Shown in pieces: positions 6,117 to 33,415 of a stretch of DNA of 64,000 bases. The notes beneath the pieces were generated by a model. It searched no databases, was not told the origin of the DNA, and was given only the letters and a program-made list of their open reading frames with translations. The DNA comes from Monocercomonoides exilis PA203. Its lineage: Eukaryota > Protista > Preaxostyla. A program made the translations under genes and the position numbers. The first letter of the stretch is position 1. Each line of letters begins with the position of its first letter. Where the stretch lies: positions 1,054,001 to 1,118,000 of the forward strand of contig LSRY02000026.1 of assembly GCA_001643675.2 (NCBI GenBank), written 5' to 3'.

Positions 6117-9100
6117 TTGAGCATTGAAATTCCAGCATCAAATCTTATGGATTTGCTACAAAATGTTCAGTCATTGCCAGTTACACCATCAAAAATTCAG
6201 CCACTTCTTTCACCAGATTTTATTCCAAGACGGTTATTTCAAAGAACTTCATCATTCCTTTCCCCTTCGTTGGGAAAATGGGTTATTATTCCAGATTTCC
6301 CATCCTTTCAAGGTTTCTTTGAACAATTTTATATTTTATTCGAAAGAAATTACTTTTTCTTAGAAACACCCCCTTATAGGAGGACAGCTTTATTAATTTC
6401 AAAATTAGAAGCATGCTGTACGCCTGTGGACTGGAGCGAAAAAGCTTCAGATATTTGTGTTCATTCTCGCAATCTGAAAGAAAAACATTTAAGATCGATT
6501 CTTAATTATATACAAGCAATGCAGAATCAAATTGAACCAACAGACGGTGATGGCTCGTTTTCATACGAAAGTTCTGAGTCTTCTACTCCTGGGAGCATTT
6601 GCGAAGATTCTCAGCAATTTGTCGATTTTCCTCCGCAAACCTGGCCTTCAGTGAAAAAATTCATTCAGTCAAACTTGCTTCGGGGCATATCAGAGCATGA
6701 TGCTCTGTCTAAAGCGACGTTTGAATTCGACGAGGAAGATGCGGTTCTTCTGAAGGAATGGGTGCATCTGGAGCTCTGCTACGAGATAACGCTCCTGTTC
6801 ATTCTTTCGCTGAATGTGAACCCACACAAGGCGAGGGACGTCACGATCACTCCAGACGTAGTCGCAGGCTTTGTCGAGGCGATGGACAGTGTCGACGCGC
6901 GCGAGCGGGACTCAGCTAAGGCGGTGCTGCACTGGATCTACTCGCGCTACCCTTCGCGCCGCTCCTTCATCCGGAAGAGCCTGGCGATTGTGTTTGACCA
7001 GATCGCAAGCGACGAGCTGAGATTCAACGGCATCAACGAGATTATGGATCTGATGGTGTCTGTGGCGACAGGGATGAGTGTGCCTATCAAAGACGACATC
7101 CTGCACCTCTTCACACACGGGGTGCTCCGGCTGCATGCTGCCCCTACTCTCCCGCTTTTTGGAAGGAGGCTCAGCGCCCTTGACACAATCTACGTGAGCA
7201 AAGAGAACAGGCTGTGTGTGGCTGTGCTGGAATGCTTGTGGCGTCTGTGGCCGAAAGTGTCGTCGCAGAAGGAGACTTTGTTTCTGGACGAGATGGAAGA
7301 TGTCATCGAGACAGTCGGGGCAGAGAAGTTCATTGAGATCTGCAAGGAGCATAAAGAGAACGTGAAGCTTCTAACTGATGGGAAACTGAGTGAGCGAGAA
7401 TATTCTGCTGTTTATCATTCGCCCTCGCCATCGCATACACCTACGCCTTCGTTTTCGCCATCATTTTCGCCATCATTTTCGCCTTCGCCTTCTCCTTTTC
7501 CTGCTCCTTCTTCTTATTCCTCGCCTTCTTCGTCTCCTTCACCTCCGTCTGCTCATTCCCCTTCCCTGTTTGCTTCTTCTTCTTCTTCTTCTTCTTCTTC
7601 TCCACCTCATTCTCTTTCTCCTTCTCTTCCTCCTCTTCAAAATTCCTCAATTTCTAACCAAAATTCATCTTTTTCTGATTCACACCTGCCAAATAATACA
7701 ACTCCTACTCTTTCTCTTTCCTCTTCTTCTCCTTCTCACCATCCATCAAAACCCCTCGTTTTGTCCTCCTATCCATCTTCCCACACCCGCCGCTCCAGAA
7801 CACCCAAACTGCCTCTTCTCCACAAGCTTTTCGTTATTCTTGCCCATTGCATCGAAAGCCCCAACTTCAATGTGGCTGAACGGGCACTTCAATACTTCGC
7901 TAATGCGACAATTACGAAGCTGCTGCAGGAGACGAAGCAAGCGTCGCTTCCTGTTTTGTTTGTGGCGATGTACAGATGCAGCCGAGGGCATTGGAATGAA
8001 GGGGTGAAAACATTAAGCTTGTCTGCACTGAAGGTGTTGGAAGAAATTGACTCGTTGTTGTTTGACATGTGTGCGAGGAATGCGAAGGAGAGGAGCGAGA
8101 CGAGAGAAAGAGTGGGGGAAGGGGTGTGGAGGTGTGTGGAGAGGAAGGCGTGGGAGAGGGTGAGGGGGTGGAGGAGAGATAGAAGGAAGAGGAAGAAGGA
8201 GAAGGAGAAGGAGAAAGAGAAAGAGAAGGAAATAAAGGAGATTGGGAATACTATTGAAATAAACAATGATAAAGAGAAAAATAATTTTAGTTCAAAAGAT
8301 GAGTCTAAAACCGGAAAAAATCTAATTTCTCCGAACCACAATGAAAACTTAAGCTCCGAAGTTGAATCGCCAAGTGAGTCTGAAAAGGTATTGTGGTGGC
8401 TCGATTTGCCAGCAGAAATACCGAATTGCGGAATTTATTCATCATCTTCATCACCATCATCATCTTCTTCTGCTTTGAACAATAATAACATCATTTCATC
8501 ATCATCTTCCTATTCTTCCACTTCATCAGCTTCTTCTTCTCTTTCCTCTTCTCCTTCTTCTTCTCTTTCTCAAACTACTCTTCTTTCTCCTTCTCCCGAC
8601 GCAAACGAAAGCGTATTTTCTTCTGTTTCTTCGTTTAATGAAAAAGATAGCTTGGATTGTGAAGAAGAAATGGAAGAAGAGAAGAAGAAGAAGAAGAAGA
8701 AGAAGAAGTCAAATGAGAATAAAGAGGAACTAGAAATAAATACGTCATCATCATCATCTTCTTCTTCTTCCACTTCCACTTCCTCTTCTTCCTCTTCTTC
8801 TCCTTCTCCTTCTCTTCTCAACCCAACTACAAATTTAATGTTCAGCATCATTTCTTCTTCTCGCCTTCATCCAAATGTGAAAAGGTTGATGAAATCTTCT
8901 TCTTCTTCTTCTTCTTTCTCTTTCTCTTTTCCTCCTCCTCCTCCTCCTCCTCCTCTTCACCCTCCATTTAAACTTTCTTCCTCTTTATCTTCTTCTTCTT
9001 CTTCTTCTTCTTCTTCTTCCTTTTCCTCTTCCTCTTCTTCTTCTTTTTCTTCCTCTTTCTCCAAAAACATGCCATTTCCTCAGTCAAAACTTGCTCTTTC

Positions 9101-12100
9101 TTCTTGTTCTTCTTCTGCTTCTTTCGCTTCTTATGCTTCTTTTGCCTCTTTCGAAGAGTTTTCTTGTGCTCCAACAGAAAGAGAGAGAAACAATTTGGAT
9201 TGTTATTCAGGGGAAAAGGGGAGAATGGAAGAAGAGAAGAAAGAAGAGAAGAAAGAAGAGAAGAAAGAAGAGAAAGAAGGAGAAAAAGGAGATGAAAAAG
9301 GAAAAGAAGAAGGAAATAGAGCTTCTGAAATACTTTCAAATGAGTCTTGCAACGGGAAAAACGTTAATATCAATGCCAAAGACGAAATAAATGCAACATC
9401 ATCATCATCATCATCTTCTTCTTCTTCTTCTTCTTCTTCTTCTTCTTCTTCTTCTTCTTCTTCTGATCCCTTAGAGCTCAATCCTGATGATGAAGCAGCA
9501 AAACCAGTTGATTTCGAACTCGATTTGGATGAAGACGCAATTGATACACCAAATTCCAAGCTTGAAAAGAGGAAGAATGTGATGTTAGCTGCTGGAGTGA
9601 AGGAAGAAGAAGAAGGGAAAGAGAAGGAGAAGGAGAAAGAAAGAGAGAAAGATAAAGAAAATGATAATTCTTCTTCTTCTTCCTCTTCTTCTTCTTCTTC
9701 TTCCTCTCTTTCTTCCCCACTTCCTTCTCCACACCCTTCCCTTCTTCCTTCCATTGGAGTGCGAAGAAAATCTCTTCTTCCGTCTTCGATTAGCCAATTG
9801 TTGCAAGACGAGCTTTCGAGTTATGTTTCAGTGGAGAAGAGGAGCCTGGAGACAGTGGCTGCAGCAGTTATGAACAGTGTGAAGAAGAGGGAGGAGAAGG
9901 AAGGAGAGAAGGAGAAAGAGGAAAAGGAAAGGGAAGGAGAAAGAGGAGAAGGAGAAAGAAATGATTATGAGATTGAAAATGGCAAAAAGAATGAGAAAGG
10001 AAAAGAAAAAGAAGAAGGAAAAGTTAACAATAAAGAAAACAACTTGGCCAATTTGACAACAAACAAGTCAGAAAGCAACAGAAATTCACAAGAATTTAGT
10101 TCATCAATTGAACATTTGAGCAATGAAGAAGGTAAAACAAAAGCAGAAGACGAAAATGCAACCGAAGCTGAATTAAAAACAAAAAGCAAAGAAAATAACA
10201 AAGAAAGAGAAAGAGAGAAAGAGAAAGACAAAGAGAAAGACAAAGAAAAAAACAAAGACAAAATAAAAACCAATGAAAAACCTTCTTGTCATTCGCGCCA
10301 CAATTCGAAAACGAATGAAAATGCACCCGAAATCGACGAAGAGTTTGTGAAGATGCTGCAAGATCGAATCAACCCTCCATTTAATCCTTTGCTCCAGTCA
10401 GTTTCACGAAGAAATTCGGAATCGCGTTCTTCTTCGATTGCTTCACAGGAATCTCTGTTGATGTCGTTGAATGCAATGAGCCAGCAGAGACAAGGGGGAG
10501 GAGGAGGAGGAGGGAAGAATAAGATGAATGAGGGGAAGGAAGAGAAGGAAGAGAACGAAAAGAAAGAAGGGAAAGGAGAAGAAGAAATAAAACCAGGAAT
10601 ATCAAAAAATGTTGAAAGAGAAGAAGAAAAAGATATGAAAACAATGGATGATCAATCTGATAAGCAAGCATGGGAAAGAAAAGGTGGCAGTGTAACTATT
10701 AAGGAGAACGATAAAGTCAAAAATGAAGGAGAAGGGGAAGGAAGAGAAGGAAGAGATAGGGAGAATGGGAAGAAGATGAAGAAGAATGAAACTTCAATAG
10801 AAGAACCAATATTGCCAACGATGGTGAAACAAGAAAGTTATTTTTCACTGCTTGAAAAAAAGATGAATGAAAATAAAGAAAATAAAAGAGAAAACAAAGA
10901 AAACAAAGAAAAAGAAGATATTTTCAATGAAAATTTCAGTTTTGCCAGTAAAATACCAGACGTTCTACAAAAGTCAACATATTCGATGATGAATGAAGCA
11001 GAGGTTGAAAATGTGAAAGAGAATAAAATTCGAGTGAGAAGGAAGGCTGATGAAATTATCGATGATTCTTTGTGTTCTTCTTCTTCTTCTACATCTTCTA
11101 CATCTTCTCAAAAATTACCTGAACTAATTAAATCAAATTCTGTCATTAGAGAACAACCTTCAAAAAGTCATTTTCAATCAGAAAACATCAAAAATTACGC
11201 AAATTCTTCTCAAAATGCCAATTTTGAAGAAGAAGAAGAAAAAGAAGAAAATGAAAATGAGAAAGAAAGAGAAAGAGAAAGAGAGAAAGAAAAATTACCA
11301 TTGCAAAATCGGAAGAAGAAGAAGAAATATAAAATTTCGAATGAATTTAAAGAAAATGTTCATAAAAAAGTTGGTTTTGTCACAGAATTTAGTGAAAATG
11401 TTGGATTTAACATGGGAAAAAGAGAAAGAGGAAAAGAAATAAGAAGAGGAGAAGGAGAAGGAAGAGAAGGAAGAAGAGAAGAAGGAAGAAGAGGAGAAAG
11501 AGGAGAAAGAAAAGAAGAAAGCCAAATAAATGAAAAAGATATGCTTCGTATAAGCAAAGCTATTTCTTCCTCTAAAACTTCTCACAATTCATCCAAATTT
11601 GCTCAAAAAACACAAAAATCTTCAAATTTGCTCAAAAATAGCAAAAAAGAGAAAAAAGGTGGAAGAGAAGAAGAAGAGAAAGAGAAAGAAAAAGAAGAAA
11701 ACACATTTTTCTCTTCTTTCCCTTCTTTTTCTCTCTTTCGCCCTTTCCCATCCACTTCTTCTTCCATGAAACATTCTTCGGATTCAGAATTTTCACTTTT
11801 TAGCAGAAGCTCTCAATCATTTGCACTGCCTACTCTTCAGCTTCCTTCTGATTCAGATTTGGTTTGTGCTAGTTATTGTGGTGGCGGAGGAGGAGGAGGA
11901 GGAGGAGGAGGTGGTGGTGGTGGTGGTGGAATAAATGAGAACAACAATAAAAAGGTTAATAATTTTAATAATAATTATGGTTATAATTCATCGAATGCAC
12001 AAATAAATAAGAAAAATGAAACAAGCTCAAATTCTTCATCAACATCTTCTCCTTCTCTTTCTCCTTCTCCCTCTTCTTCCACAAATCCAAGCCCTCCTTC

Positions 12101-13994
12101 TCTTCTCCGTTCTTGTAACTCTGCAGTTTTCCCTTCTTCCTCTTCTCCTTCCTCTTCCTCCTCCTCCTCCTCCTCCTCTTCTTCTTCTTCTTCTGTTCCT
12201 TTCCGACTCCACCAATCTTTCAGCCCAACACGTCACACAAAGCCACTTCGTTCAATCGATCCAACTACTTTCAATTCTTTCAAAACATTTTCTGATTTTC
12301 GCAATGTTCATACTGCTTCTCCTTCTTCGTCTTCTTCTTCTCTTTCTTCTTCTCCTTCGCCTTCGCCTTCTCCAATTCATTCTCCTTCTCATTCTTCATT
12401 TCCCTCTTCTTCCTCTTCCTCTTCTCCTCTTTCTCCTTCTCCTTCTCCTCTTCTCAAGCCCACTCGTCCTAATCGTTTGTGCCAATCACCCACTTTCATC
12501 AGAAGAGCACAAAGATCACATTCTTCTTTGAACCAACGCCACGTCTCATTAACTACCCTGCCTTCATTGAAAACTTCTTCTTCGACCGCTTCATTCACTT
12601 CTTCTTCTTCCTCTTCTGTTGATTCTTCTTCTTCTCCTCCTCCTCCTTTAAATTCATATCCATATAATTCATCTTCCTCTTCAACAACACCTTCACCAAT
12701 TGATATCATTTCCAGCAAATCTCTTTTGTATTTGATCAACACCCCACTTTCATCCTCAACATCTTCTTCTTCTTCTTCTTCTTCTTCTTCTTCTTCTTTG
12801 CTTCCTCCTTCTTCTTCAGTATTTCTTCCACTTTCCTCTTCTTGTTCTCGCTCCCGTTCCAGTTCCCGTTCTCATTCTCGCTCTCGTTCGCCTTCTCCTT
12901 CTCCTTCTCCTTCTCCTTCTCCTTCTCCTTCATCTTCATCTTCATCTTCATCTTCCACTCCTTCTTCCTCTTCCTCTCGTTCTCGTTCTCGTTCCCCTTC
13001 TCGTTCTCTCTCTCCAACTCTTTCTACTTCCCTCTCCCCTTCTCTTTCTCTCTCCCCTTCTCTTTCTCATTCTCTTGTAGATTCTCGTTCTTCTTCCTCT
13101 TCTTTCTCTTCTTCTTTTTCCTCTTCTCTTTCTCCTTCTCCTTCTCCTTCTCCTCTTCTTCCTCTGCGATGGAAGCTTCCTAGCTCAAATACCTCAAATC
13201 TTCCTGTTTTTGACCCAGTTGAAAGCGAAGAAGCGTCTACCAATTGTATTTCTTTGTGCCTCACTGAAAACTCTTGCCAATCCAAAAAACGAAATTTTCC
13301 TTCTTCTTCTTCTTCTTCATCGTCATCTTCTTCTTCAGACTCAATTTCGCCTTCATTTTATTCACAAGCAATGAAATCAGAGCTGACTAATAAACAAAAT
13401 CTTTCTTCGAATGTTCCTCTGTTTCCAGCATTTAAGCCGTCGCAGCCGGTGAAAGCAAGGATCGGGGCGACGAGGCTAATGAAGGAGCATGAAAAGGCAA
13501 TGCAACAATACCAACATCAACAGCAGCATAGTCAATTTCATAATCAACATGTTAGTCAGCAAGTTAATCAGCATGTTAATCCACACATTCAGTATAGTCA
13601 GCATAATCAATTGAATCAGCACAATCAGCGCAATCAGTATAGCCAGTTTAGTCAGTATAGCCAGCATCATCCGCTTCAGAGTCAGCAGTTTCATCCATCT
13701 CAACAACAACAACAACAACAAAGCCAAAGCCAAAGTCAAAGTCAAAGTCAATATCAACATTCTCTTCAACCACAGAAAGTGAAGTCATCACAAGAATTGC
13801 CCCTCAGGCAAAGCATTGAAACTCCTTTTCATTCGACTGCTTCTTCTGTTTCTTCTGCTTCTTCTGCTTCTTCTGCTTCAGCTCAGCTGCCTCCTCTTCT
13901 GCAAAGGAAGAAGGAGAGGAAAGAAACACACAGTTTGTTCAGAAGTGGTTCAAAAACAGGGAGTTCGATGATTTCTTTGGTTGATTCGGTATAG
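6117..13994 (+). CDS. Protein phosphatase 2A regulatory subunit B'/B56 family protein with very long low-complexity tail (2625 aa; true start uncertain)
   Basis: B56 motifs: EWVHLELCYE, DSVDARERDSAKAVLHWIY, RRSFIRK, FNGINEIMDLMVSVATG, LWRLWPKVSSQKETLFLDEMEDV, CIESPNFNVAERAL, HWNEGVKTLSLSALKVLEEID, and RRKSLLP. Confidence 0.92.
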   Translation: MSIEIPASNLMDLLQNVQSLPVTPSKIQPLLSPDFIPRRLFQRTSSFLSPSLGKWVIIPDFPSFQGFFEQFYILFERNYFFLETPPYRRTALLISKLEACCTPVDWSEKASDICVHSRNLKEKHLRSILNYIQAMQNQIEPTDGDGSFSYESSESSTPGSICEDSQQFVDFPPQTWPSVKKFIQSNLLRGISEHDALSKATFEFDEEDAVLLKEWVHLELCYEITLLFILSLNVNPHKARDVTITPDVVAGFVEAMDSVDARERDSAKAVLHWIYSRYPSRRSFIRKSLAIVFDQIASDELRFNGINEIMDLMVSVATGMSVPIKDDILHLFTHGVLRLHAAPTLPLFGRRLSALDTIYVSKENRLCVAVLECLWRLWPKVSSQKETLFLDEMEDVIETVGAEKFIEICKEHKENVKLLTDGKLSEREYSAVYHSPSPSHTPTPSFSPSFSPSFSPSPSPFPAPSSYSSPSSSPSPPSAHSPSLFASSSSSSSSSPPHSLSPSLPPLQNSSISNQNSSFSDSHLPNNTTPTLSLSSSSPSHHPSKPLVLSSYPSSHTRRSRTPKLPLLHKLFVILAHCIESPNFNVAERALQYFANATITKLLQETKQASLPVLFVAMYRCSRGHWNEGVKTLSLSALKVLEEIDSLLFDMCARNAKERSETRERVGEGVWRCVERKAWERVRGWRRDRRKRKKEKEKEKEKEKEIKEIGNTIEINNDKEKNNFSSKDESKTGKNLISPNHNENLSSEVESPSESEKVLWWLDLPAEIPNCGIYSSSSSPSSSSSALNNNNIISSSSSYSSTSSASSSLSSSPSSSLSQTTLLSPSPDANESVFSSVSSFNEKDSLDCEEEMEEEKKKKKKKKKSNENKEELEINTSSSSSSSSSTSTSSSSSSSPSPSLLNPTTNLMFSIISSSRLHPNVKRLMKSSSSSSSFSFSFPPPPPPPPLHPPFKLSSSLSSSSSSSSSSSFSSSSSSSFSSSFSKNMPFPQSKLALSSCSSSASFASYASFASFEEFSCAPTERERNNLDCYSGEKGRMEEEKKEEKKEEKKEEKEGEKGDEKGKEEGNRASEILSNESCNGKNVNINAKDEINATSSSSSSSSSSSSSSSSSSSSSSDPLELNPDDEAAKPVDFELDLDEDAIDTPNSKLEKRKNVMLAAGVKEEEEGKEKEKEKEREKDKENDNSSSSSSSSSSSSSLSSPLPSPHPSLLPSIGVRRKSLLPSSISQLLQDELSSYVSVEKRSLETVAAAVMNSVKKREEKEGEKEKEEKEREGERGEGERNDYEIENGKKNEKGKEKEEGKVNNKENNLANLTTNKSESNRNSQEFSSSIEHLSNEEGKTKAEDENATEAELKTKSKENNKEREREKEKDKEKDKEKNKDKIKTNEKPSCHSRHNSKTNENAPEIDEEFVKMLQDRINPPFNPLLQSVSRRNSESRSSSIASQESLLMSLNAMSQQRQGGGGGGGKNKMNEGKEEKEENEKKEGKGEEEIKPGISKNVEREEEKDMKTMDDQSDKQAWERKGGSVTIKENDKVKNEGEGEGREGRDRENGKKMKKNETSIEEPILPTMVKQESYFSLLEKKMNENKENKRENKENKEKEDIFNENFSFASKIPDVLQKSTYSMMNEAEVENVKENKIRVRRKADEIIDDSLCSSSSSTSSTSSQKLPELIKSNSVIREQPSKSHFQSENIKNYANSSQNANFEEEEEKEENENEKEREREREKEKLPLQNRKKKKKYKISNEFKENVHKKVGFVTEFSENVGFNMGKRERGKEIRRGEGEGREGRREEGRRGERGERKEESQINEKDMLRISKAISSSKTSHNSSKFAQKTQKSSNLLKNSKKEKKGGREEEEKEKEKEENTFFSSFPSFSLFRPFPSTSSSMKHSSDSEFSLFSRSSQSFALPTLQLPSDSDLVCASYCGGGGGGGGGGGGGGGGGINENNNKKVNNFNNNYGYNSSNAQINKKNETSSNSSSTSSPSLSPSPSSSTNPSPPSLLRSCNSAVFPSSSSPSSSSSSSSSSSSSSSVPFRLHQSFSPTRHTKPLRSIDPTTFNSFKTFSDFRNVHTASPSSSSSSLSSSPSPSPSPIHSPSHSSFPSSSSSSSPLSPSPSPLLKPTRPNRLCQSPTFIRRAQRSHSSLNQRHVSLTTLPSLKTSSSTASFTSSSSSSVDSSSSPPPPLNSYPYNSSSSSTTPSPIDIISSKSLLYLINTPLSSSTSSSSSSSSSSSSLLPPSSSVFLPLSSSCSRSRSSSRSHSRSRSPSPSPSPSPSPSPSSSSSSSSSTPSSSSSRSRSRSPSRSLSPTLSTSLSPSLSLSPSLSHSLVDSRSSSSSFSSSFSSSLSPSPSPSPLLPLRWKLPSSNTSNLPVFDPVESEEASTNCISLCLTENSCQSKKRNFPSSSSSSSSSSSSDSISPSFYSQAMKSELTNKQNLSSNVPLFPAFKPSQPVKARIGATRLMKEHEKAMQQYQHQQQHSQFHNQHVSQQVNQHVNPHIQYSQHNQLNQHNQRNQYSQFSQYSQHHPLQSQQFHPSQQQQQQQSQSQSQSQSQYQHSLQPQKVKSSQELPLRQSIETPFHSTASSVSSASSASSASAQLPPLLQRKKERKETHSLFRSGSKTGSSMISLVDSV

Positions 13995-18660: not shown

Positions 18661-19052
18661 TTATCATAATGAAAAAGATTTGCGTTATGAATCAAATATT
18701 CGATATTTTTATCTCATTTTACACTTTATTTATCATCAGTTGAATTTTGATGTTTTTTTTATGAAAAATTTATGAAATAGTTATATCTAAGTTTTTTTGT
18801 TTTGATATTGGAAAACAAAACTGAATTTTTTTCTTTTTGAATTGCGATATATAAATTTCCATTTTTTTAAAAAATCAAAAAAAAAAAAAAAAAATATTTG
18901 AAAATGCACTTATTGATTGCTATCCAATAAATGCAGTTGAACATCATTCCTTTTCATTCAAATATTCAAAAAAATGAACACATTTCATTTATTATTTTTG
19001 ATCGCAAAAAGTTCATATTATGTTCGATGTTTTTTTATGAAAATACACCAAA

Positions 19053-22000
19053 AATAATTCTAATTCGAAAAAAAATAATTCAATTTCGAAAATTAATAAT
19101 TCGAATTCGGAATTAATAATTCGAAATCGAAAAAAATAATTCGATTTCGGAATTAATATTTCAATTTCGAAAATTAATAATTCGAATTCGGAATTAATAA
19201 TTCGAAATCGAAAAAAATAATTCGATTTCGGAATTAATATTTCAAATTCGAAAATTAATAATTCGAATTCGGAATTAATAATTCGAAATCGAAAAAAATA
19301 ATTCGATTTCGAAAATTAATAATTCAAATTCGGAATTAATAATTCGAAATCGAAAAAAAATAATTCGATTTCGGAATTAATATTTCAATTTCGAAAATTA
19401 ATAATTCGAATTCGGAATTAATAATTCGAAATCGAAAAAAATAATTCGATTTCGGAATTAATATTTCAATTTCGAAAATTAATAATTCGAATTCGGAATT
19501 AATAATTCGAAATCGAAAAAAATAATTCGATTTCGGAATTAATATTTCAATTTCGAAAATTAATAATTCGAATTCGGAATTAATAATTCGAAATCGAAAA
19601 AAATAATTCGATTTCGGAATTAATATTTCAAATTCGAAAATTAATAATTCGAATTCGGAATTAATAATTCGAAATCGAAAAAAAATAATTCGATTTCGGA
19701 ATTAATATTTCAAATTCGAAAATTAATAATTCGAATTCGGAATTAATAATTCGAAATCGAAAAAAAATAATTCGATTTCGGAATTAATATTTCAATTTCG
19801 AAAATTAATAATTCGAATTCGGAATTAATAATTCGAAATCGAAAAAAAATAATTCGATTTCGAAAATTAATAATTCAAATTCGGAATTAATAATTCGAAA
19901 TCGAAAAAAAATAATTCGATTTCGGAATTAATATTTCAATTTCGAAAATTAATAATTCGAATTCGGAATTAATAATTCGAAATCGAAAAAAAATAATTCG
20001 ATTTCGGAATTAATATTTCAATTTCGAAAATTAATAATTCGAATTCGGAATTAATAATTCGAAATCGAAAAAAAATAATTCGATTTCGGAATTAATATTT
20101 CAAATTCGAAAATTAATAATTCGAATTCGGAATTAATAATTCGAAATCGAAAAAAAATAATTCGATTTCGAAAATTAATAATTCAAATTCGGAATTAATA
20201 ATTCGAAATCGAAAAAAAATAATTCGATTTCGGAATTAATATTTCAATTTCGAAAATTAATAATTCGAATTCGGAATTAATAATTCGAAATCGAAAAAAA
20301 TAATTCGATTTCGGAATTAATATTTCAATTTCGAAAATTAATAATTCGAATTCGGAATTAATAATTCGAAATCGAAAAAAATAATTCGATTTCGAAAATT
20401 AATAATTCAAATTCGGAATTAATAATTCGAAATCGAAAAAAATAATTCGATTTCGGAATTAATATTTCAATTTCGAAAATTAATAATTCGAATTCGGAAT
20501 TAATAATTCGAAATCGAAAAAAATAATTCGATTTCGGAATTAATATTTCAATTTCGAAAATTAATAATTCGAATTCGGAATTAATAATTCGAAATCGAAA
20601 AAAATAATTCGATTTCGGAATTAATATTTCAATTTCGAAAATTAATAATTCGAATTCGGAATTAATAATTCGAAATCGAAAAAAATAATTCGATTTCGAA
20701 AATTAATAATTCAAATTCGGAATTAATAATTCGAAATCGAAAAAAAATAATTCGATTTCGGAATTAATATTTCAATTTCGAAAATTAATAATTCGAATTC
20801 GGAATTAATAATTCGAAATCGAAAAAAATAATTCGATTTCGGAATTAATATTTCAAATTCGAAAATTAATAATTCGAATTCGGAATTAATAATTCGAAAT
20901 CGAAAAAAAATAATTCGATTTCGAAAATTAATAATTCAAATTCGGAATTAATAATTCGAAATCGAAAAAAAATAATTCGATTTCGGAATTAATATTTCAA
21001 TTTCGAAAATTAATAATTCGAATTCGGAATTAATAATTCGAAATCGAAAAAAAATAATTCGATTTCGGAATTAATATTTCAATTTCGAAAATTAATAATT
21101 CGAATTCGGAATTAATAATTCGAAATCGAAAAAAAATAATTCGATTTCGGAATTAATATTTCAATTTCGAAAATTAATAATTCGAATTCGGAATTAATAA
21201 TTCGAAATCGAAAAAAAATAATTCGATTTCGGAATTAATATTTCAATTTCGAAAATTAATAATTCGAATTCGGAATTAATAATTCGAAATCGAAAAAAAA
21301 TAATTCGATTTCGAAAATTAATAATTCAAATTCGGAATTAATAATTCGAAATCGAAAAAAAATAATTCGATTTCGGAATTAATATTTCAATTTCGAAAAT
21401 TAATAATTCGAATTCGGAATTAATAATTCGAAATCGAAAAAAAATAATTCGATTTCGAAAATTAATAATTCAAATTCGGAATTAATAATTCGAAATCGAA
21501 AAAAAATAATTCGATTTCGGAATTAATATTTCAATTTCGAAAATTAATATTTCAAATTCGGAATTAATAATTCGAAATCGAAAAAAATAATTCGATTTCG
21601 GAATTAATATTTCAATTTCGAAAATTAATAATTCGAATTCGGAATTAATAATTCGAAATCGAAAAAAATAATTCGATTTCGAAAATTAATAATTCGAATT
21701 CGGAATTAATAATTCGAAATCGAAAAAAATAATTCGATTTCGGAATTAATATTTCAAATTCGAAAATTAATATTTCAAATTCGGAATTAATAATTCGAAA
21801 TCGAAAAAAATAATTCGATTTCGGAATTAATATTTCAATTTCGAAAATTAATAATTCGAATTCGGAATTAATAATTCGAAATCGAAAAAAATAATTCGAT
21901 TTCGAAAATTAATAATTCGAATTCGGAATTAATAATTCGAAATCGAAAAAAATAATTCGATTTCGGAATTAATATTTCAAATTCGAAAATTAATAATTCG

Positions 22001-25000
22001 AATTCGGAATTAATAATTCGAAATCGAAAAAAATAATTCGATTTCGGAATTAATATTTCAAATTCGAAAATTAATATTTCAAATTCGAAAATTAATAATT
22101 CAAATTCGGAATTAATAATTCGAATTCGGAAATTAATAATTCAAATTCGGAATTAATAATTCGAAATCGAAAAAAATAATTCGATTTCGGAATTAATATT
22201 TCAAATTCGAAAATTAATAATTCGAATTCGGAATTAATAATTCGAAATCGAAAAAAATAATTCGATTTCGAAAATTAATAATTCAAATTCGGAATTAATA
22301 ATTCGAAATCGAAAAAAAATAATTCGATTTCGGAATTAATATTTCAATTTCGAAAATTAATAATTCGAATTCGGAATTAATAATTCGAAATCGAAAAAAA
22401 TAATTCGATTTCGGAATTAATATTTCAAATTCGAAAATTAATAATTCGAATTCGGAATTAATAATTCGAAATCGAAAAAAATAATTCGATTTCGGAATTA
22501 ATATTTCAAATTCGAAAATTAATAATTCGAATTCGGAATTAATAATTCGAAATCGAAAAAAATAATTCGATTTCGAAAATTAATAATTCGAATTCGGAAT
22601 TAATAATTCGAAATCGAAAAAAATAATTCGATTTCGGAATTAATATTTCAATTTCGAAAATTAATAATTCGAATTCGGAATTAATAATTCGAAATCGAAA
22701 AAAATAATTCGATTTCGGAATTAATATTTCAAATTCGAAAATTAATATTTCAAATTCGGAATTAATAATTCGAAATCGAAAAAAATAATTCGATTTCGGA
22801 ATTAATATTTCAATTTCGAAAATTAATAATTCGAATTCGGAATTAATAATTCGAAATCGAAAAAAATAATTCGATTTCGAAAATTAATAATTCGAATTCG
22901 GAATTAATAATTCGAAATCGAAAAAAATAATTCGATTTCGGAATTAATATTTCAATTTCGAAAATTAATAATTCGAATTCGGAATTAATAATTCGAAATC
23001 GAAAAAAATAATTCGATTTCGGAATTAATATTTCAAATTCGAAAATTAATATTTCAAATTCGGAATTAATAATTCGAAATCGAAAAAAAATAATTCGATT
23101 TCGGAATTAATATTTCAAATTCGAAAATTAATAATTCGAATTCGGAATTAATAATTCGAAATCGAAAAAAAATAATTCGATTTCGGAATTAATATTTCAA
23201 ATTCGAAAATTAATATTTCAAATTCGAAAATTAATAATTCAAATTCGGAATTAATAATTCGAATTCGGAAATTAATAATTCGATTTCGAAAAAAATAATT
23301 CAAATTCGAAAATTAATAATTCAAATTCGGAATTAATAATTCGAAATCGAAAAAAAATAATTCGATTTCGGAATTAATATTTCAAATTCGAAAATTAATA
23401 ATTCGAATTCGGAATTAATAATTCGAAATCGAAAAAAAATAATTCGATTTCGAAAATTAATAATTCGATTTCGGAATTAATATTTCAAATTCGAAAATTA
23501 ATATTTCAAATTCGAAAATTAATAATTCGATTTCGGAATTAATATTTCAAATTCGGAAATTAATAATTCAAATTCGGAATTAATAATTCGAAATCGAAAA
23601 AAAATAATTCGATTTCGGAATTAATATTTCAAATTCGAAAATTAATAATTCGAATTCGGAATTAATAATTCGAAATCGAAAAAAAATAATTCGATTTCGG
23701 AATTAATATTTCAATTTCGAAAATTAATAATTCGAATTCGGAATTAATAATTCGAAATCGAAAAAAAATAATTCGATTTCGGAATTAATATTTCAAATTC
23801 GAAAATTAATAATTCGAATTCGGAATTAATAATTCGAAATCGAAAAAAAATAATTCGATTTCGGAATTAATATTTCAATTTCGAAAATTAATAATTCGAA
23901 TTCGGAATTAATAATTCGAAATCGAAAAAAAATAATTCGATTTCGGAATTAATATTTCAAATTCGAAAATTAATATTTCAAATTCGAAAATTAATAATTC
24001 GAATTCGGAATTAATAATTCGAAATCGAAAAAAATAATTCGATTTCGGAATTAATATTTCAATTTCGAAAATTAATAATTCGAATTCGGAATTAATAATT
24101 CGAAATCGAAAAAAATAATTCGATTTCGAAAATTAATAATTCAAATTCGGAATTAATAATTCGAAATCGAAAAAAATAATTCGATTTCGGAATTAATATT
24201 TCAATTTCGAAAATTAATAATTCGAATTCGGAATTAATAATTCGAAATCGAAAAAAATAATTCGATTTCGGAATTAATATTTCAAATTCGAAAATTAATA
24301 ATTCGAATTCGGAATTAATAATTCGAAATCGAAAAAAATAATTCGATTTCGAAAATTAATAATTCAAATTCGGAATTAATAATTCGAAATCGAAAAAAAT
24401 AATTCGATTTCGGAATTAATATTTCAATTTCGAAAATTAATAATTCGAATTCGGAATTAATAATTCGAAATCGAAAAAAATAATTCGATTTCGGAATTAA
24501 TATTTCAATTTCGAAAATTAATAATTCGAATTCGGAATTAATAATTCGAAATCGAAAAAAATAATTCGATTTCGAAAATTAATAATTCAAATTCGGAATT
24601 AATAATTCGAAATCGAAAAAAATAATTCGATTTCGGAATTAATATTTCAATTTCGAAAATTAATAATTCGAATTCGGAATTAATAATTCGAAATCGAAAA
24701 AAATAATTCGATTTCGGAATTAATATTTCAATTTCGAAAATTAATAATTCGAATTCGGAATTAATAATTCGAAATCGAAAAAAATAATTCGATTTCGGAA
24801 TTAATATTTCAATTTCGAAAATTAATAATTCGAATTCGGAATTAATAATTCGAAATCGAAAAAAATAATTCGATTTCGAAAATTAATAATTCAAATTCGG
24901 AATTAATAATTCGAAATCGAAAAAAATAATTCGATTTCGAAAATTAATAATTCAAATTCGGAATTAATAATTCGAAATCGAAAAAAATAATTCGATTTCG

Positions 25001-26980
25001 GAATTAATATTTCAAATTCGAAAATTAATAATTCGAATTCGGAATTAATAATTCGAAATCGAAAAAAAATAATTCGATTTCGGAATTAATATTTCAAATT
25101 CGAAAATTAATAATTCGAATTCGGAATTAATAATTCGAAATCGAAAAAAAATAATTCGATTTCGGAATTAATATTTCAATTTCGAAAATTAATAATTCGA
25201 ATTCGGAATTAATAATTCGAAATCGAAAAAAATAATTCGATTTCGAAAATTAATAATTCAAATTCGGAATTAATAATTCGAAATCGAAAAAAAATAATTC
25301 GATTTCGGAATTAATATTTCAATTTCGAAAATTAATAATTCGAATTCGGAATTAATAATTCGAAATCGAAAAAAATAATTCGATTTCGGAATTAATATTT
25401 CAATTTCGAAAATTAATAATTCGAATTCGGAATTAATAATTCGAAATCGAAAAAAATAATTCGATTTCGGAATTAATATTTCAAATTCGAAAATTAATAA
25501 TTCAAATTCGGAATTAATAATTCGAAATCGAAAAAAATAATTCGATTTCGGAATTAATATTTCAATTTCGAAAATTAATAATTCGAATTCGGAATTAATA
25601 ATTCGAAATCGAAAAAAATAATTCGATTTCGGAATTAATATTTCAATTTCGAAAATTAATAATTCGAATTCGGAATTAATAATTCGAAATCGAAAAAAAT
25701 AATTCGATTTCGGAATTAATATTTCAATTTCGAAAATTAATAATTCGAATTCGGAATTAATAATTCGAAATCGAAAAAAATAATTCGATTTCGAAAATTA
25801 ATAATTCAAATTCGGAATTAATAATTCGAAATCGAAAAAAAATAATTCGATTTCGGAATTAATATTTCAATTTCGAAAATTAATAATTCGAATTCGGAAT
25901 TAATAATTCGAAATCGAAAAAAAATAATTCGATTTCGGAATTAATATTTCAAATTCGAAAATTAATAATTCGAATTCGGAATTAATAATTCGAAATCGAA
26001 AAAAAATAATTCGATTTCGGAATTAATATTTCAATTTCGAAAATTAATAATTCGAATTCGGAATTAATAATTCGAAATCGAAAAAAAATAATTCGATTTC
26101 GAAAATTAATAATTCGATTTCGAAAATTAATATTTCAAATTCGAAAATTAATAATTCAAATTCGGAATTAATAATTCGAAATCGAAAAAAAATAATTCGA
26201 TTTCGGAATTAATATTTCAAATTCGAAAATTAATAATTCGAATTCGGAATTAATAATTCGAAATCGAAAAAAAATAATTCGATTTCGAAAATTAATAATT
26301 CAAATTCGGAATTAATAATTCGAAATCGAAAAAAAATAATTCGATTTCGGAATTAATATTTCAAATTCGAAAATTAATAATTCGAATTCGGAATTAATAA
26401 TTCGAAATCGAAAAAAATAATTCGATTTCGAAAATTAATAATTCAAATTCGGAATTAATAATTCGAAATCGAAAAAAAATAATTCGATTTCGGAATTAAT
26501 ATTTCAATTTCGAAAATTAATAATTCGAATTCGGAATTAATAATTCGAAATCGAAAAAAATAATTCGATTTCGGAATTAATATTTCAATTTCGAAAATTA
26601 ATAATTCGAATTCGGAATTAATAATTCGAAATCGAAAAAAATAATTCGATTTCGAAAATTAATATTTCAAATTCGGAATTAATAATTCGAAATCGAAAAA
26701 AATAATTCGATTTCGGAATTAATATTTCAATTTCGAAAATTAATAATTCGAATTCGGAATTAATAATTCGAAATCGAAAAAAAATAATTCGATTTCGGAA
26801 TTAATATTTCAATTTCGAAAATTAATAATTCGAATTCGGAATTAATAATTCGAAATCGAAAAAAAATAATTCGATTTCGGAATTAATATTTCAATTTCGA
26901 AAATTAATAATTCGAATTCGGAATTAATAATTCGAAATCGAAAAAAAATAATTCGATTTCGAAAATTAATAATTCAAATT
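19053..26980 (+). repeat. Satellite array of 20/21-bp monomers in 81/82-bp (4-mer) and 61/62-bp (3-mer) higher-order units
   Basis: Unit TTCGATTTCGGAATTAATAT-TTCAATTTCGAAAATTAATAA-TTCGAATTCGGAATTAATAA-TTCGAAATCGAAAAAAATAA (period 81 between 19141 and 19222). Confidence 0.98.
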
Positions 26981-27490
26981 GGCATAGGTCTATTTTGTAC
27001 CAGTTTGGAAAGGCTTTTTTAAATTTTTTTATTAACGTATTATTAATTCTCATAATTATTGCAAGCAAACTGCTGATGGAAAAAGTCAAAATTCTTCCAT
27101 CAAAAAATTGATATTTTTTCTATTTTTTCTCAACCCATAATATTTTCCTATTGATCGCAAAGAATTAAAAATTCAATTTTTGACTTTGTAAAGTTTTTTC
27201 ATTAATTTCATAAGTGTGATTTTTATCAAAATTGTTTGTGTTTATTTTATGTTTCCTAATATTGTTATTACACCATTCGTATGTTGCTCTTTTCACAGAA
27301 TAACTTTACCAATGTATTTATCATTTTCTCAAGAATATAAATTGAAATCGCGTTATAAATAATATATAGCACAAAGATTTATTGAAAGGTAGTGTGTGTA
27401 TGTTTATAATAGTCGATGAATATTTTATCAAACTGTCATTTATTTTTTATTTTTATTTTTATTTTTTTTTTTTTGATTTGACTGAATAAG

Positions 27491-28244
27491 AAAAGACAGT
27501 TTAAGTGGAGGAAAATCTCACGTGTTTGAGTGCTCATTCGCTTCATGCTCTTTTTCAGATCGATATGGTGGAGGGATGTATTGTTACAATGTTCCGGCTA
27601 CATTCAAAATGCGGAGCCTTCAGCTTATTTCGTGCAACGCAACATCAACTGGCGGAGGATTGTGTTTCAATCCAAACCAACAAACAGCTCCAAGCAACAA
27701 CCTTTATTGCTATTTCTTCTTCTTCCACGATTGCAATTGCAACGCCTCCACTCCATATGGCCATGATGTGTATTTTGAAGATTATTACAATCTCTTCTCA
27801 TCGAATAACCCGTTCTATGAATCGTACACAACAAATACTAATGATAAGAGAGTGTACTACCAATATTATAACGGAAACAATTGGGTGTATCAGGAAACAC
27901 AAAAGAAGGGCTGGCTGAAGGAGGGGATGAAAGATAGATATGTTGGGGTGAGTGGGGATGACGCAAACAACCTGTGTGGGATGAGCGAGTCAGCACCGTG
28001 CAAGACAGTGGGGTATGCAGCGGAGTCGAGCATGGCACAGCTGAGCTCGACAATCACAGTGCTGAGTGGGAAGCATGTGAGCGAAGGGGCCACAATCAAT
28101 GCTGGGGAAAAGAAGATAATAATAACAGGGAAAGGGAAGACAGTGAGTGTGATTGCAAATAATTCTCTTATTTCTTCATCGACAAAGCTGTTCAGTGTGA
28201 TGAGAAGACAGTTGGAGTCGAAATATTTTCGCTGGCTGAAATAA
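27491..28244 (+). pseudogene. Captured fragment of a Cys/Gly-rich putative surface protein gene (parallel beta-helix-like GGG repeats)
   Basis: SDRYGGGMYC..CNATSTGGGLCF..YGHDVYF..DRYVGVSGDDANNLCGMSESAPCKTVGYA..IIITGKG. Preceded by a T-rich intron acceptor ending at 27490; no ATG start and apparently truncated at the 3' end. Confidence 0.7.
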
Positions 28245-29212
28245 CATCAAATCCCAGGTCTGAAGGAGAGCATCCAACCTCAGTATCCGTATTTGTGCTG
28301 GCTTAATCACAACCACCAATAACTGCCGTTGAGATGAAAAAATAAAAATCTGCCGCATTCCCTCGTCTCCACGCTGCACCTCTCCCAATCTCCGTTTTCA
28401 TCGTTCTCATCGCCTTCTCCGATGTTTGAGTTCACCCAAGCACTGGGATCTTGGAGAAAATTCTTCTGTTGCAAAACATCATCAACTGAGCCCTGCTGAG
28501 AAACAAATTGCGACATAAACACCACAGAATGTGTGACTTCAACGGCTTTATCGAGAGACAAACAAAATGGCATACCTCTATCACATCTGCAGTAAAAAGA
28601 TTGAAAAAAGCAAAAGAAATAGAGCAACCCACAAACACACTCGCACATCCAGCTACAGCATTTTGAAGGCGTAGAATGTTGAAGGATGAATTACAAATAT
28701 TATTCACTTACAGGCACAGCCAGATATACTTAAAAACTCAGCAGTTCATCAGCTGTTCCACCTCAAAAAATCAAATTTCAGACTTCAGAAAGAGCTGTGA
28801 TCCATTCCTCCTCAATGGAAAAACAATTTTTTCAAGACACTTCGTCTTTTAACAATTAATTTTTTTAAAAACAAATACATCCATTGAACTTTTTTGTTTC
28901 TCTTTAATAAAAAATTTCTTCAAAAATGGTGAAATGTTGGATTTAAAGTTTTCTATATGAGGTGATTCTCCAAAATTCAACTCAGAACCTTTGAAAAAGC
29001 GTTTATCTGTCAATGCAGTTTAAAAAGGGATTTTCGCACGCTGTTTCTCCTGTGTGTTTCGTTTTGTCTTTAAATGCCACACTGAAACATGAATAAAAAT
29101 ATGACAGAATGGTCAAAGAATAAAAGAAAATGCATTAATGAATTGTTATTGAAGATTTGAAAAAAGTTAACAACAAAGTTATTAAAATACAAAAAAATCA
29201 ATATGACAGAAT

Positions 29213-30232
29213 TTGGATATTATGAAATCAATGACTCAGAAGTTTTCACAAACAAATGAAGTTTCCTCGTCTCTTTTCTGTATTCCATATATCAAATGCC
29301 TCTTTGTCTTAGCCTTTTTCTTTCATTCTTCTCTTCTTCCTTCTCTTCTCGTTCAATTAAACTCTGTTGTTTCAAAATTCTCTATCTCCGTCTCTATCAC
29401 ATTTCCTCAAATTCTCAAAAGCCAAGTCCTCCAGCCTATATTTCCTGTTGCGTCTACTCTTCATCCACCACCACTCCATGGGGAGTATATTTATCCAATA
29501 TCTTCTCAACTTTTCAACTTGCTTCGAAAGGGCTCATCCTGGCCTCAGCTTTGCTTCCAACAGCCAACAATTTATCCTTCAATCTTTTCTCTCTTATCTT
29601 CTATTATCTATTTCCGGCATTTCAGCTCCAAAACACACACAGCGTCGATCACCTCCATCGTCATTTACAACAATCTTGCCAGGCATGGAGCCATCACACA
29701 CACGAACCTGCAACAGCTCCTTTTTATTCACTCATCGCAACTTCTTCACTTCACAATTCTATTTCTTCTTCCTCTTCACACAGCTTTCCATCAATGTGCA
29801 ATATCAAAACAAAGATCAAGCATTCTGGACCAATTTATCTTTACACATTGGTTCTTCATTGTCACTTCCATCTGTTCGACAATTCTTTTGCACCAGCTCA
29901 TGGAATATCAAATCAAACAGATGATAAACTTCTTTTCCATCCAACTCTTAATAATGGCCTTTGTGGTTTATATCGTTCAGTTCACACCTTTTTCTTCCTT
30001 ATCACCAAGAATTTTTCTGCTTTATCTCGTCTATTCTTTTCTCTCGCATTTCATTTCTATTAATTCTTCTTATCCAGCCTCTTCACATCCTCTCCCTAAT
30101 TATCTTTTTCGCTGCTTGCTCTCTCCCATCCTATTAAAATCCTTTCTTTCAAAAACAGCGTTAAATCGATCTTTCATCGTATCAGCTGTTCAACGTGGAA
30201 TTAATAACAAGATGAAAATAATCACAATTTGA
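29213..30232 (+). other. Pyrimidine-rich, G-poor segment open in all three + frames; decayed ORF of unknown origin inside the TIR element
   Basis: Overlapping 339, 255 and 185 aa ORFs with no recognisable domain. Confidence 0.3.
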
Positions 30233-30677
30233 ATATCATTATAAAAGAATATTATTTGAAATCAACAACAGAATTACCTTTGAAAAGTGTTGTTTTCGAT
30301 ATTGTCCAAAGTACAACTATAATTGTGTATGCACAAGAATAAATTTCAAACATTGAATCAGCTGAAAATTTTCAAATGAAAAATAATACTTGTAAATATT
30401 TACTTGAGAAAACAGCGATAATATTATTTCTTCTCCAATTATTGCATTGAACAGTTGCTTTGAGCATCACAAAGTCAAAAATTGAATTTTTAATTCTTTG
30501 CGATCAATAGGAAAATATTATGGGTTGAGAAAAAATAGAAAAAATATCAATTTTTTGATGGAAGAATTTTGACTTTTTCCATCAGCTGTTTGCTTGCAAT
30601 AATTATGAGAATTAATAATACGTTAATAAAAAAATTTAAAAAAGCCTTTCCAAACTGGTACAAAATAGACCTATGCC

Positions 30678-31700
30678 TTCAAATTCGGAATTAATAATTC
30701 GAAATCGAAAAAAAATAATTCGATTTCGAAAATTAATAATTCGAATTCGGAATTAATAATTCGAAATCGAAAAAAAATAATTCGATTTCGGAATTAATAT
30801 TTCAATTTCGAAAATTAATAATTCGAATTCGGAATTAATAATTCGATTTCGGAATTAATATTTCAAATTCGAAAATTAATATTTCAAATTCGAAAATTAA
30901 TAATTCGAATTCGGAATTAATAATTCGAAATCGAAAAAAAATAATTCGATTTCGGAATTAATATTTCAATTTCGAAAATTAATAATTCGAATTCGGAATT
31001 AATAATTCGAAATCGAAAAAAAATAATTCGATTTCGGAATTAATATTTCAATTTCGAAAATTAATAATTCGAATTCGGAATTAATAATTCGAAATCGAAA
31101 AAAAATAATTCGATTTCGAAAATTAATAATTCAAATTCGGAATTAATAATTCGAAATCGAAAAAAAATAATTCGATTTCGAAAATTAATAATTCGATTTC
31201 GGAATTAATATTTCAAATTCGAAAATTAATATTTCAAATTCGAAAATTAATAATTCGAATTCGGAATTAATAATTCGAAATCGAAAAAAAATAATTCGAT
31301 TTCGGAATTAATATTTCAAATTCGAAAATTAATAATTCGAATTCGGAATTAATAATTCGAAATCGAAAAAAAATAATTCGATTTCGGAATTAATATTTCA
31401 ATTTCGAAAATTAATAATTCAAATTCGGAATTAATAATTCGAAATCGAAAAAAAATAATTCGATTTCGGAATTAATATTTCAATTTCGAAAATTAATAAT
31501 TCGAATTCGGAATTAATAATTCGAAATCGAAAAAAAATAATTCGATTTCGGAATTAATATTTCAATTTCGAAAATTAATAATTCAAATTCGGAATTAATA
31601 ATTCGAATTCGGAAATTAATAATTCGATTTCGAAAAAGAATAATTCAATTTCGAAAAAGAATAATTCAATTTCGAAAATGATTATTTCAATTTCGAAATT
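30678..31700 (+). repeat. Continuation of the satellite after the insertion, degenerating at ~31620-31700
   Basis: Same 20/21-bp monomers, resumed in register after the TSD. Confidence 0.97.
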
Positions 31701-32202
31701 CATTAAAAACTTAAATTTTTAATTTATCTCGAGAATGGATTTCAGAAAAGGAAAAGTTATTTTTTTGACCAATCAAATTTTATTACGCATAGAAAACTGT
31801 TTTTTTTATTGCAACAATCAATAAATCAATTTTTTAAATTTTTTTTCATTTTCGAAAATCATTACTCAAATAATATTAATCTTATAAAAATTCATTCTAT
31901 TGAATAACCTAATAAAAATTGAAAAAATTTAATCACGATTATAGTATTATTTCTTCACAATAATGTGATTGTTTCATTGGTAAATATATTAAAATCATCA
32001 ATTTTTAATAAGAAAATGTATTTCTTTCCTTTTCAAATTAACTTCAATCAATAAATCTTCATTCAGAATGAAAGAAAATTTTTAATGAAAATGCATCATT
32101 TTTCAAATATTGATAAACAAAATTTGCTGATGAGATAAAAATTAAAAGAATTTAAAACCCCAAACACAAGTTATTCATTCCACAAATTAAAAAAATTCAC
32201 GT

Positions 32203-32510
32203 TTCGAATTTGAATTATTAATTTTCGAAATCGAATTATTAATTTCCGAATTCGAATTATTAATTCCGAATTTGAATTATTAATTTTCGAATTTGAAATA
32301 TTAATTTTCGAATTTGAAATATTAATTCCGAAATCGAATTATTTTTTTTCGATTTCGAATTATTAATTCCGAATTCGAATTATTAATTTTCGAATTTGAA
32401 ATATTAATTCCGAAATCGAATTATTTTTTTTCGATTTCGAATTATTAATTCCGAATTTGAATTATTAATTTTCGAAATTGAATTATTTTTTTTCGAATTA
32501 GAATTATTAT
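32203..32510 (-). repeat. Inverted ~310-bp copy of the satellite (unexpanded right TIR)
   Basis: TTCGAATTTGAATTATTAATTTTCGAAATCG... is the reverse complement of the array monomers. Confidence 0.95.
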
Positions 32511-33415
32511 TGGTGTACCTGAAGAAAAATATTTCACCCGATCTCAGATTAGAAATGATCAATTTGGTGTTTTCATGTAAATGGAAAAATGAAATTTGAA
32601 AATATCAAGAAAAAATAAATTATCCAATAAAAGAACATAAAGATAAAACTGGATATGCATGTTGTTCATGAAAATAGACTTCATATTTTTGTAAAAGGCT
32701 TCGTTGGCTGAAAAAACTTTTCAAAAAAGAAGTGATTGTTATTAAGATCCTAACTTTTTTCGGGGTGTTTTTTTATGAAAATTCTTTGTCCTTTGCTACG
32801 TGATTTGCATTTATATTCGAAATGTTTATCAATCATTTCAAAAGCCATCGTTTGATTAGAAAAAATTATCGACACGAGTGATAATTTTTGAAATCATATT
32901 TTTTCATACATAATTTTCGGTTCAGAATTATTTCTTGAATATCAATAAAAAAAATTGAAAAGTGAAAAGGTTGATTGAATGCATTTTAATCTTTAATTCG
33001 GAAAAACCATTTGTTTTTAAAAAAATTTTCATGTTTTTTCTCTTTTGAATTGAAATTATCTTTCAAAAAGCGAACAATCTTTGAAAAATCAACACCCCGA
33101 AAAAAGGTATTGATTCAAAATAAATCATCCACACATCATTACATAGATCTTTCACTTTTTAGGGTTCATTTTTGTGTATTTTCTACTTTTATTCTAATCA
33201 AAATTTAACAGTGAAAATATATGATTACGAAAATATCCACCAGAATAAACAAAAAAACCGAAATAATTCGATGAGTTGTGGATTAAAACATAATAACAAA
33301 CCAGGAAATTAAATCGTAAATCTTGTTAAAAAGTATTTCATATTGTTAAAACTTGTTTGAGACTTTTAATTGATTGGCGAATTTAAACTAAAAAGGTATT
33401 CCTCTGTGATGTGAT

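Follow-up and report, generated by a model that had tools for sequence, protein, structure and literature searches.

How can one inverted arm of a small transposon come to be nearly thirty times as long as its partner, and does such an arm deserve to be called a satellite? The question is raised by a stretch of 64,000 nucleotides from Monocercomonoides exilis PA203 (GenBank assembly GCA_001643675.2, contig LSRY02000026.1, positions 1,054,001 to 1,118,000 of the forward strand), which is referred to here as the window and corresponds to C21:1054001-1118000 when the assembly contigs carry short labels of the form C21; positions without a contig label are window positions. Read directly from the sequence, the window holds at 19046-32515 a foldback element of 13,470 bp that is abutted on either side by TA, and a sequence-only reading had seen in it a satellite array born from one arm of a foldback transposon. 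The element is very probably a copy of a non-autonomous, foldback-type family, similar to MITEs (miniature inverted-repeat transposable elements) and inserting at TA, in which the left arm expanded in place and was later entered by another transposon.

Anatomy of the locus

The element begins beside a putative TA target-site dinucleotide at 19044-19045. The outer part of its left arm (19046-26980, forward strand, 7,935 bp, 20% GC) opens with a CACCAAA tip, behind which 389 subunits of 20 or 21 bp stand in tandem, and the inner part (30686-31698, forward strand, 1,013 bp) adds another 48 subunits, the last of which are of a degenerate inner-end type. A non-coding loop, or middle domain, of 503 bp follows (31699-32201), which is conserved across the family by its identity to other copies and has no ATG-initiated open reading frame (ORF) longer than 29 aa. 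The right arm (32202-32515, reverse strand, 314 bp) comprises the tip and 15 subunits in the orientation opposite to that of the left arm, and terminates in GGTG at 32515, after which comes the second TA at 32516-32517. The arms were delimited by Tandem Repeats Finder (TRF), which gave periods of 20, 41, 61 and 81 both at 19053-26980 and at 30678-31698, and a 308-bp array in inverted orientation at 32202-32509, together with parsing into subunits, tip matches at both outer ends and, for the right arm, alignment to the left end.

The tip, CACCAA[A/T]AATAATTCTAATTCG, is present at both TA-flanked ends, at 19046-19067 on the forward strand and at 32494-32515 on the reverse strand. When the left end is aligned with the reverse complement of the right end the two are 92% identical over 370 columns and ~97% identical over the first 230 bp. 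Once the nested insert is taken out, along with one of the two copies of the duplicated target, the long arm measures 7,935 + 1,013 = 8,948 bp, against 314 bp for the short one, a ratio of 28.5 (437 against 15 subunits), and there is no ATG-ORF in its array portion. The sequence-only reading, in which a single CACCAA terminus capped both a ~9-kb array and a ~310-bp inverted copy, therefore placed the element and its termini exactly, and its estimate of a ~30-fold asymmetry by length was close to that measured.

A dispersed family with the same ends

The 22-nt tip was searched for in the whole 82.3-Mb genome with one mismatch allowed and the reversed pattern as control. There were 133 matches (68 forward, 65 reverse) on many contigs and none for the control, therefore chance is excluded as their source. 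TA lies outside 64 of the 73 distinct termini, although this dinucleotide has a frequency of 5.3% in the background, which ties the CACCAA terminus to dispersed, TA-flanked elements, as had been proposed. As far as the sequence goes, TA is a conserved flank and not a proven duplication.

The family was sampled at sequence level through 20 tip pairs and 20 further loci. Typical copies, as judged from the 20 pairs, are 366-1,400 bp in length and have between 1 and 18 subunits in an arm. Within a copy the numbers often differ from one arm to the other (8 and 13, 18 and 13, or 2 and 11 subunits, for example), so that the short, symmetric arms that the sequence-only reading would have sought elsewhere were found to be short but often asymmetric. 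In the window copy and 21 others each arm is a string of 20/21-bp subunits, the first of which starts 7 nt from the tip, subunits are present in every family copy examined, and the ATG-ORFs of 17 copies do not exceed 65 aa. Inverted arms built of subrepeats and variable in length, in a dispersed multicopy family of little coding capacity, are the marks of foldback-type elements.

The loop of the window copy is 70-91% identical to that of 35 distinct family copies, with a best genome match of 94% (C12:1086792) among 153 genome-wide candidates. Loops compared within the family have a median identity of 77% and reach 99.6% for one pair of loci, and the family is therefore old, yet was mobile fairly recently. 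There is no clear signal that homogenisation of arms is a rule in the family, mean identity being 0.90 within elements and 0.885 between them; the arms of the window copy, at 0.97-0.98, are above this family mean. Nor is there a significant bias in which side of the loop carries the expanded arm, with a hand tally of 11 against 6.

Two tip pairs, L044 (C25:2122949-2127019) and L050 (C42:197415-201275), each consist of two whole inverted family copies. Their outer flanks are mutually reverse complementary, which places the copies inside larger palindromic duplications of ~4 kb. Between the inverted copies of L044 (2340-2819 of that locus, forward strand) is an ORF of 159 aa with a tyrosine-recombinase-like motif, ALRPAELERL, and no Pfam match, which is a candidate only.

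Internal structure of the long arm

To parse the long arm, the array was cut at a fixed anchor and the subunit types were lettered A to H, with a change of case marking a one-base variant. All 437 subunits are 20 or 21 bp in length, and 428 belong to one or other of ten sequence types. The commonest higher-order unit is A-B-C-D, of 81/82 bp, which occurs 52 times, and interspersed among these units is one of 143 bp (A-B-E-F plus B-C-D), the types E and F of which resemble C/D and D/A hybrids. When the string of subunits is autocorrelated, peaks appear at lags of 4, 11 and 15 subunits, and most of the spacings between the EcoRI sites predicted from the sequence are of 81/82 bp (39 of them) or of 142-144 bp (17).

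Beyond these units the array contains duplicated blocks. The longest exact block repeat, with homopolymer variants merged, is of 38 subunits (~0.78 kb) and is found at 19972 and 24156, whereas in 300 shuffles of the tokens the longest repeat averaged 16.4 subunits and never exceeded 27. The analysis of monomer-variant strings that the sequence-only reading had put forward as a check thus recovers both higher-order and block structure, with the 38-subunit repeat beyond every shuffle. The block duplication is real and rests on substitution variants; clustering of the D and d substitution variants themselves is not significant (z = -1.7).

The same reading had taken runs of units with seven or eight adenines as a record of block duplications. 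The 7-A and 8-A forms of subunit B are indeed clustered (22 runs against 55.5 expected, z = -6.4), and the runs are where they were said to be, 7-A near 24000-25100 and 8-A near 20900-21500. The two copies of the 38-subunit block, however, differ in their 7-A/8-A states, and the runs may be artefacts of nanopore homopolymer calling or of polishing. Because of these unshared states and the limits of nanopore polishing the runs are treated as uncertain evidence that carries little weight, and it is the substitution-defined repeat by which the duplication of blocks stands.

The inner end of the arms leaves a further trace in the array. Read inwards, the right arm consists of the tip, two terminal subunits, the string F-b-C-d-A-b-C-d-d-F-H and two degenerate inner subunits. 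The rare 21-bp subunit H, which contains GGAAATTA, is found at the inner end of both arms, starting at 31598 in the left, and also within the array at 22115 and 23254, in agreement with the recurrence that had been noticed at ~22120, ~23260 and ~31600. At 23254 a near-complete right-arm-like string stands before H, with inner-end-like subunits and then array after it. This is the pattern expected as the footprint of an out-of-register (unequal) exchange at the inner end of the arm, by which a module of nearly arm size would be duplicated. At the outer end the first subunit behind the tip and one of the common subunits of the array are 2 mismatches apart, therefore the arms are reiterated sub-terminal sequence, as has been proposed for the element Tetris.

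The subunits are also quasi-palindromic, with the array matching its own reverse complement at ~75%, and 164 nt of single-stranded array DNA is predicted to fold better than all of 200 shuffles (z = -2.8). Such self-complementarity and folding are consistent with DNA that is prone to hairpins and slippage, and would favour hairpin formation and stalling of replication forks.

One large array and few intermediates

The large array is the only one of its kind found in the assembly. A 33-nt pattern spanning the A/B junction has 160 matches in the genome, 111 of them inside the window, and a BLAST search with a 331-bp array query found elsewhere only stretches of up to 1 kb, which adjoin known tips where this could be checked. 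With neither search was a second large array, or a free-standing array lacking tips, found in the 82.3-Mb assembly.

Arms of intermediate size are found at two loci that are known from match coordinates only. At C47:107687-109930 arms of ~980 and 760 bp lie around a loop, and at C47:1028080-1029699 the arms are of 843 and 272 bp; the expanded arms of the two loci correspond to ~37-48 subunits. The first of these loci is part of C47:107687-111046, where a pair of family copies stands back to back or overlaps, and it has the largest arms after the window copy. Other tip pairs set far apart that were considered as further arm expansions (L044, 4.1 kb; L045, 7.0 kb; L050, 3.9 kb; and pairs on C26 and C32 of 16.7 and 10.1 kb) were rejected, being short-armed copies that carry insertions, copies that are neighbours, or inverted duplications.

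The nested insert and the order of events

An element of 3,697 bp that is unrelated to the foldback family sits within the long arm at 26981-30677. Alignment of its two ends shows them to be inverted over ~210 bp with 1 mismatch, beginning GGCATAGG, and it is flanked by an 8-bp target-site duplication, TTCAAATT, at 26973-26980 and 30678-30685. As this duplication is a clean copy of array sequence, the array predates the nested insertion. The interruption does not figure in the sequence-only reading of the array.

The terminus of the nested insert occurs 25 times in the genome, in about a dozen copies with near-identical ends and of two size classes, ~3.7 kb and 5.7-6.1 kb. Other copies of this second family are at C7:1101942-1108081, C13:1545955-1549803, C17:536898-540590, C18:232703-238588, C46:638687-642388, C91:285849-291724, C23:1110844-1114534 and C27:994792-1000456. 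The length of the duplication fits hAT, Merlin or MULE elements. Merlin was rejected, with no Merlin match inside any copy among the 150 scored of 575 candidates, and a Pfam search of the ORFs of the nested insert gave no match and no recognisable transposase. One of these ORFs, at 27522-28244, resembles a fragment of a cysteine/glycine-rich surface protein and is among those without a Pfam match. The long copy on C7 holds a pogo-type DDE_1 frame, which is probably itself nested.

Probable expansion in place and its alternatives

Amplification of one arm in place is the best reading of the locus because the array lies wholly inside one TA-flanked family copy, the short arm is like those of the family and there is no free-standing array. 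That the array is an asymmetrically amplified terminal inverted repeat, as the sequence-only reading held, is upheld by its position inside such a copy opposite an unexpanded arm that is ordinary for the family. An end of this family consists of the 7-nt CACCAAA tip and a variable count of quasi-palindromic 20/21-bp subrepeats, with the conserved loop of ~500 bp between the two arms. After insertion the left arm has probably grown in place from ~15 to 437 subunits, with the right arm kept at family size, and unequal sister-chromatid exchange, replication slippage or break-induced replication among the left-arm subrepeats could have driven this growth. The likely route would run from the four-subunit unit of 81/82 bp through the 143-bp and larger units to blocks of up to ~0.8 kb, after which the second, unrelated transposon entered the array.

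There are points that weigh against this account. Neither an empty site nor a short-armed allele of the locus was found among the family sequences sampled, and no autonomous element bearing the family ends was identified. In addition, the length of the array and its homopolymer variants depend on a nanopore assembly made with Canu in which multi-copy regions are less well polished, and the near-perfect uniformity of the subunits could in part be a product of consensus polishing.

It is therefore worth asking whether the true locus is short-armed, or has a much shorter array, that the assembler inflated or mis-joined. The assembly consists of 101 contigs (~82.3 Mb, N50 1,379,369 bp) and was built by Canu from nanopore R9.4.1 reads with a read N50 of 8.9 kb, followed by Nanopolish and ten rounds of Pilon, with polishing described by its authors as poorer in multi-copy parts (PMC8767320). 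A read N50 so near to the 7.9-kb uninterrupted stretch, the weaker polishing and the suspiciously uniform subunits would all suit an artefact. Nevertheless, position-specific substitution variants and rare subunits at 22115, 23254 and 23542 would anchor reads within the array, which has unique DNA at one edge and the nested element with its clean 8-bp duplication at the other, and arms of an intermediate 0.75-1 kb exist at other loci. The sequencing yield was also large, at 12.9 Gb for an 82-Mb genome, though this includes bacteria of the culture (PMC8767320). An artefact of this sort is thus considered unlikely.

The direction of events could also have been the reverse, with a satellite existing first and the family taking its arms from it, or with a short-armed copy landing at the edge of an older array. 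It has been proposed that miDNA4 of Xenopus, a Tc1/mariner MITE, captured tandem repeats that already existed (PMC12628747), yet the array in M. exilis begins exactly at the 7-nt tip beside TA, its subunits are shared by every copy examined down to the near-match of the first subunit behind the tip, and no array without tips was seen in the genome. Moreover, the loops of the family have diverged to ~70% identity whilst units of the array barely differ from one another, which makes the family older than the array, and a satellite-first origin is very improbable. Least credible of all is that repeated insertion of family members into one another, followed by recombination, built the array, since, for all that TA targets abound within the arms, that copies are adjacent or nested at C47:107687-111046 and that double insertions are a documented satellite route (PMC5932611), the 437 subunits run head-to-tail on one strand and the parsing found no internal tip, loop fragment or inverted stretch across the 8.9 kb.

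If expansion in place is accepted, whether the product is a satellite depends on what the term is taken to include. The long arm is a head-to-tail tandem array with higher-order periodicity, as satellites are. Satellites in the stricter sense are large arrays independent of any element, of tens of kb to Mb and usually at several loci or in heterochromatin, whereas here there is a single 8.9-kb array inside intact ends. Of the transposon-to-satellite transition that had been suggested, amplification of the arm in place thus remains, and satellite status, for a single 9-kb locus with intact ends, no spread and no role in the chromosome known for it, does not. The word satellite overstates the locus, which is filed here as a foldback-type element with a hyper-expanded arm.

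Which transposase moves the family

The TA flank suggests, on sequence grounds, that the family is mobilised in trans by a TA-targeting transposase of Tc1/mariner/pogo type. A Pfam search of the loci with unpaired tips and of the large copies found no transposase, only a weak Beta_helix match in a neighbouring gene and a sub-threshold match to Nop25. Candidates in the genome number 732 for pogo and 575 for Merlin. Pogo (DDE_1) was rejected as a partner, as none of 150 scored matches lies inside a tip pair. On C91 the tip at 1641421-1641442 has, ~1 kb to its inside, a Tc1-like DDE_3 frame that is complete and open over 552 aa, and a second DDE_3 match lies inside the tip at C8:15820, two co-locations where a uniform model predicts ~0.2. 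As there are no tips near the copies of this transposase on C16, which have near-identical scores, chance may explain the co-location and DDE_3 is kept as a lead only. The DDE_3 domains at C91:1639985-1640422, C16:244383-244820 and C16:561268-561705 are in uninterrupted frames of 532-552 aa, from which it appears that the M. exilis genome has intact Tc1-type transposase genes.

Comparison with known systems

In FB elements of Drosophila melanogaster arm length varies from copy to copy and also within a single copy, and most of their copies are non-coding. Their arms reach a few kb and they make 9-bp target duplications, unlike the TA of the M. exilis family. We know of no report of an FB element with one arm ~30 times the length of the other. 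The likeness is one of arm architecture, FB arms being built of short tandem subrepeats around a loop. Classical FB elements are those of Potter et al. (1980), as cited in PMC4079207.

Of the known cases, Tetris of Drosophila virilis comes closest, and the route from arm to array is one already described. In Tetris the TIR-220 repeats of the arms have been amplified inside the element into arrays of kb size, for which unequal crossing-over was proposed (Dias et al. 2014, PMC4079207). The two are alike in being non-autonomous foldback elements in which the tandem repeats of the arms are related to terminal sequence, in both kb-size arrays were amplified within the element and repeat number varies (between copies and alleles), and for neither has an autonomous partner been found. 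Arm repeats that also occur as long arrays are represented in M. exilis by one array of 437 subunits, compared with up to 66 repeats in Tetris. The two also differ in that Tetris has 8-10-bp target duplications (the Mutator superfamily has been proposed for it) in place of a TA flank, and 220-bp repeats with long unique flanking domains, whereas the 20/21-bp subunits of M. exilis start 7 nt from the tip. Tetris is known from three complete copies only and has many arrays in beta-heterochromatin, confirmed by fluorescence in situ hybridisation; the M. exilis family has at least 66 copies and one large array with both element ends intact.

IR-DR Tc1-like elements carry reiterated putative transposase-binding sites at their ends, and Galileo, a P superfamily element of Drosophila buzzatii, makes 7-bp duplications. 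The ends of Galileo, as discussed in PMC4079207, likewise carry reiterated putative transposase-binding sequences, and by analogy the 20-bp subunits of M. exilis may be putative sites of this kind. It is a long shot that such reiterated sites for a transposase or a host protein would let the 437-subunit arm act as a sink for protein or as a seed of silent chromatin. If this were so, expansion of an arm would regulate the whole family instead of being neutral junk.

Small non-autonomous transposons with internal arrays of variable copy number are also known, namely miDNA4 (a Tc1/mariner MITE of Xenopus), Xstir and the MITE-like repeats of bivalves (PMC12628747). A TA-type superfamily is common to miDNA4 and the M. 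exilis family, but in miDNA4, Xstir and the bivalve repeats the array is central between short inverted ends, whereas in M. exilis the repeats are the inverted ends. Long internal arrays of transposons have been proposed to become classical satellites upon decay of the ends, and terminal inverted repeats and short internal arrays are both listed as known satellite sources in a 2025 review (PMC12628747).

The picture of satellite origin is not changed by this locus. The route from a transposon arm or array to a satellite is documented for animals, in flies, frogs and bivalves (PMC4079207, PMC12628747), and the word protist is absent from the review (PMC12628747); the locus adds a metamonad case of the arm-to-array route. 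It is also unusually legible, with both tips, both TA flanks, an unexpanded arm and the loop, and besides these a few intermediates and dozens of relatives with short arms; because all of these are present in one assembly, a direct comparison of the product with its starting state can be made. Unclassified repeats make up 35% of the M. exilis assembly (PMC8767320), and the family helps to annotate this fraction.

Elsewhere in the window, at 6117-13994 on the forward strand, an open frame of 2,625 codons runs through purine/pyrimidine-rich tri- and hexanucleotide repeats of GAA/CTT type and is either a putative low-complexity gene or a chance frame.

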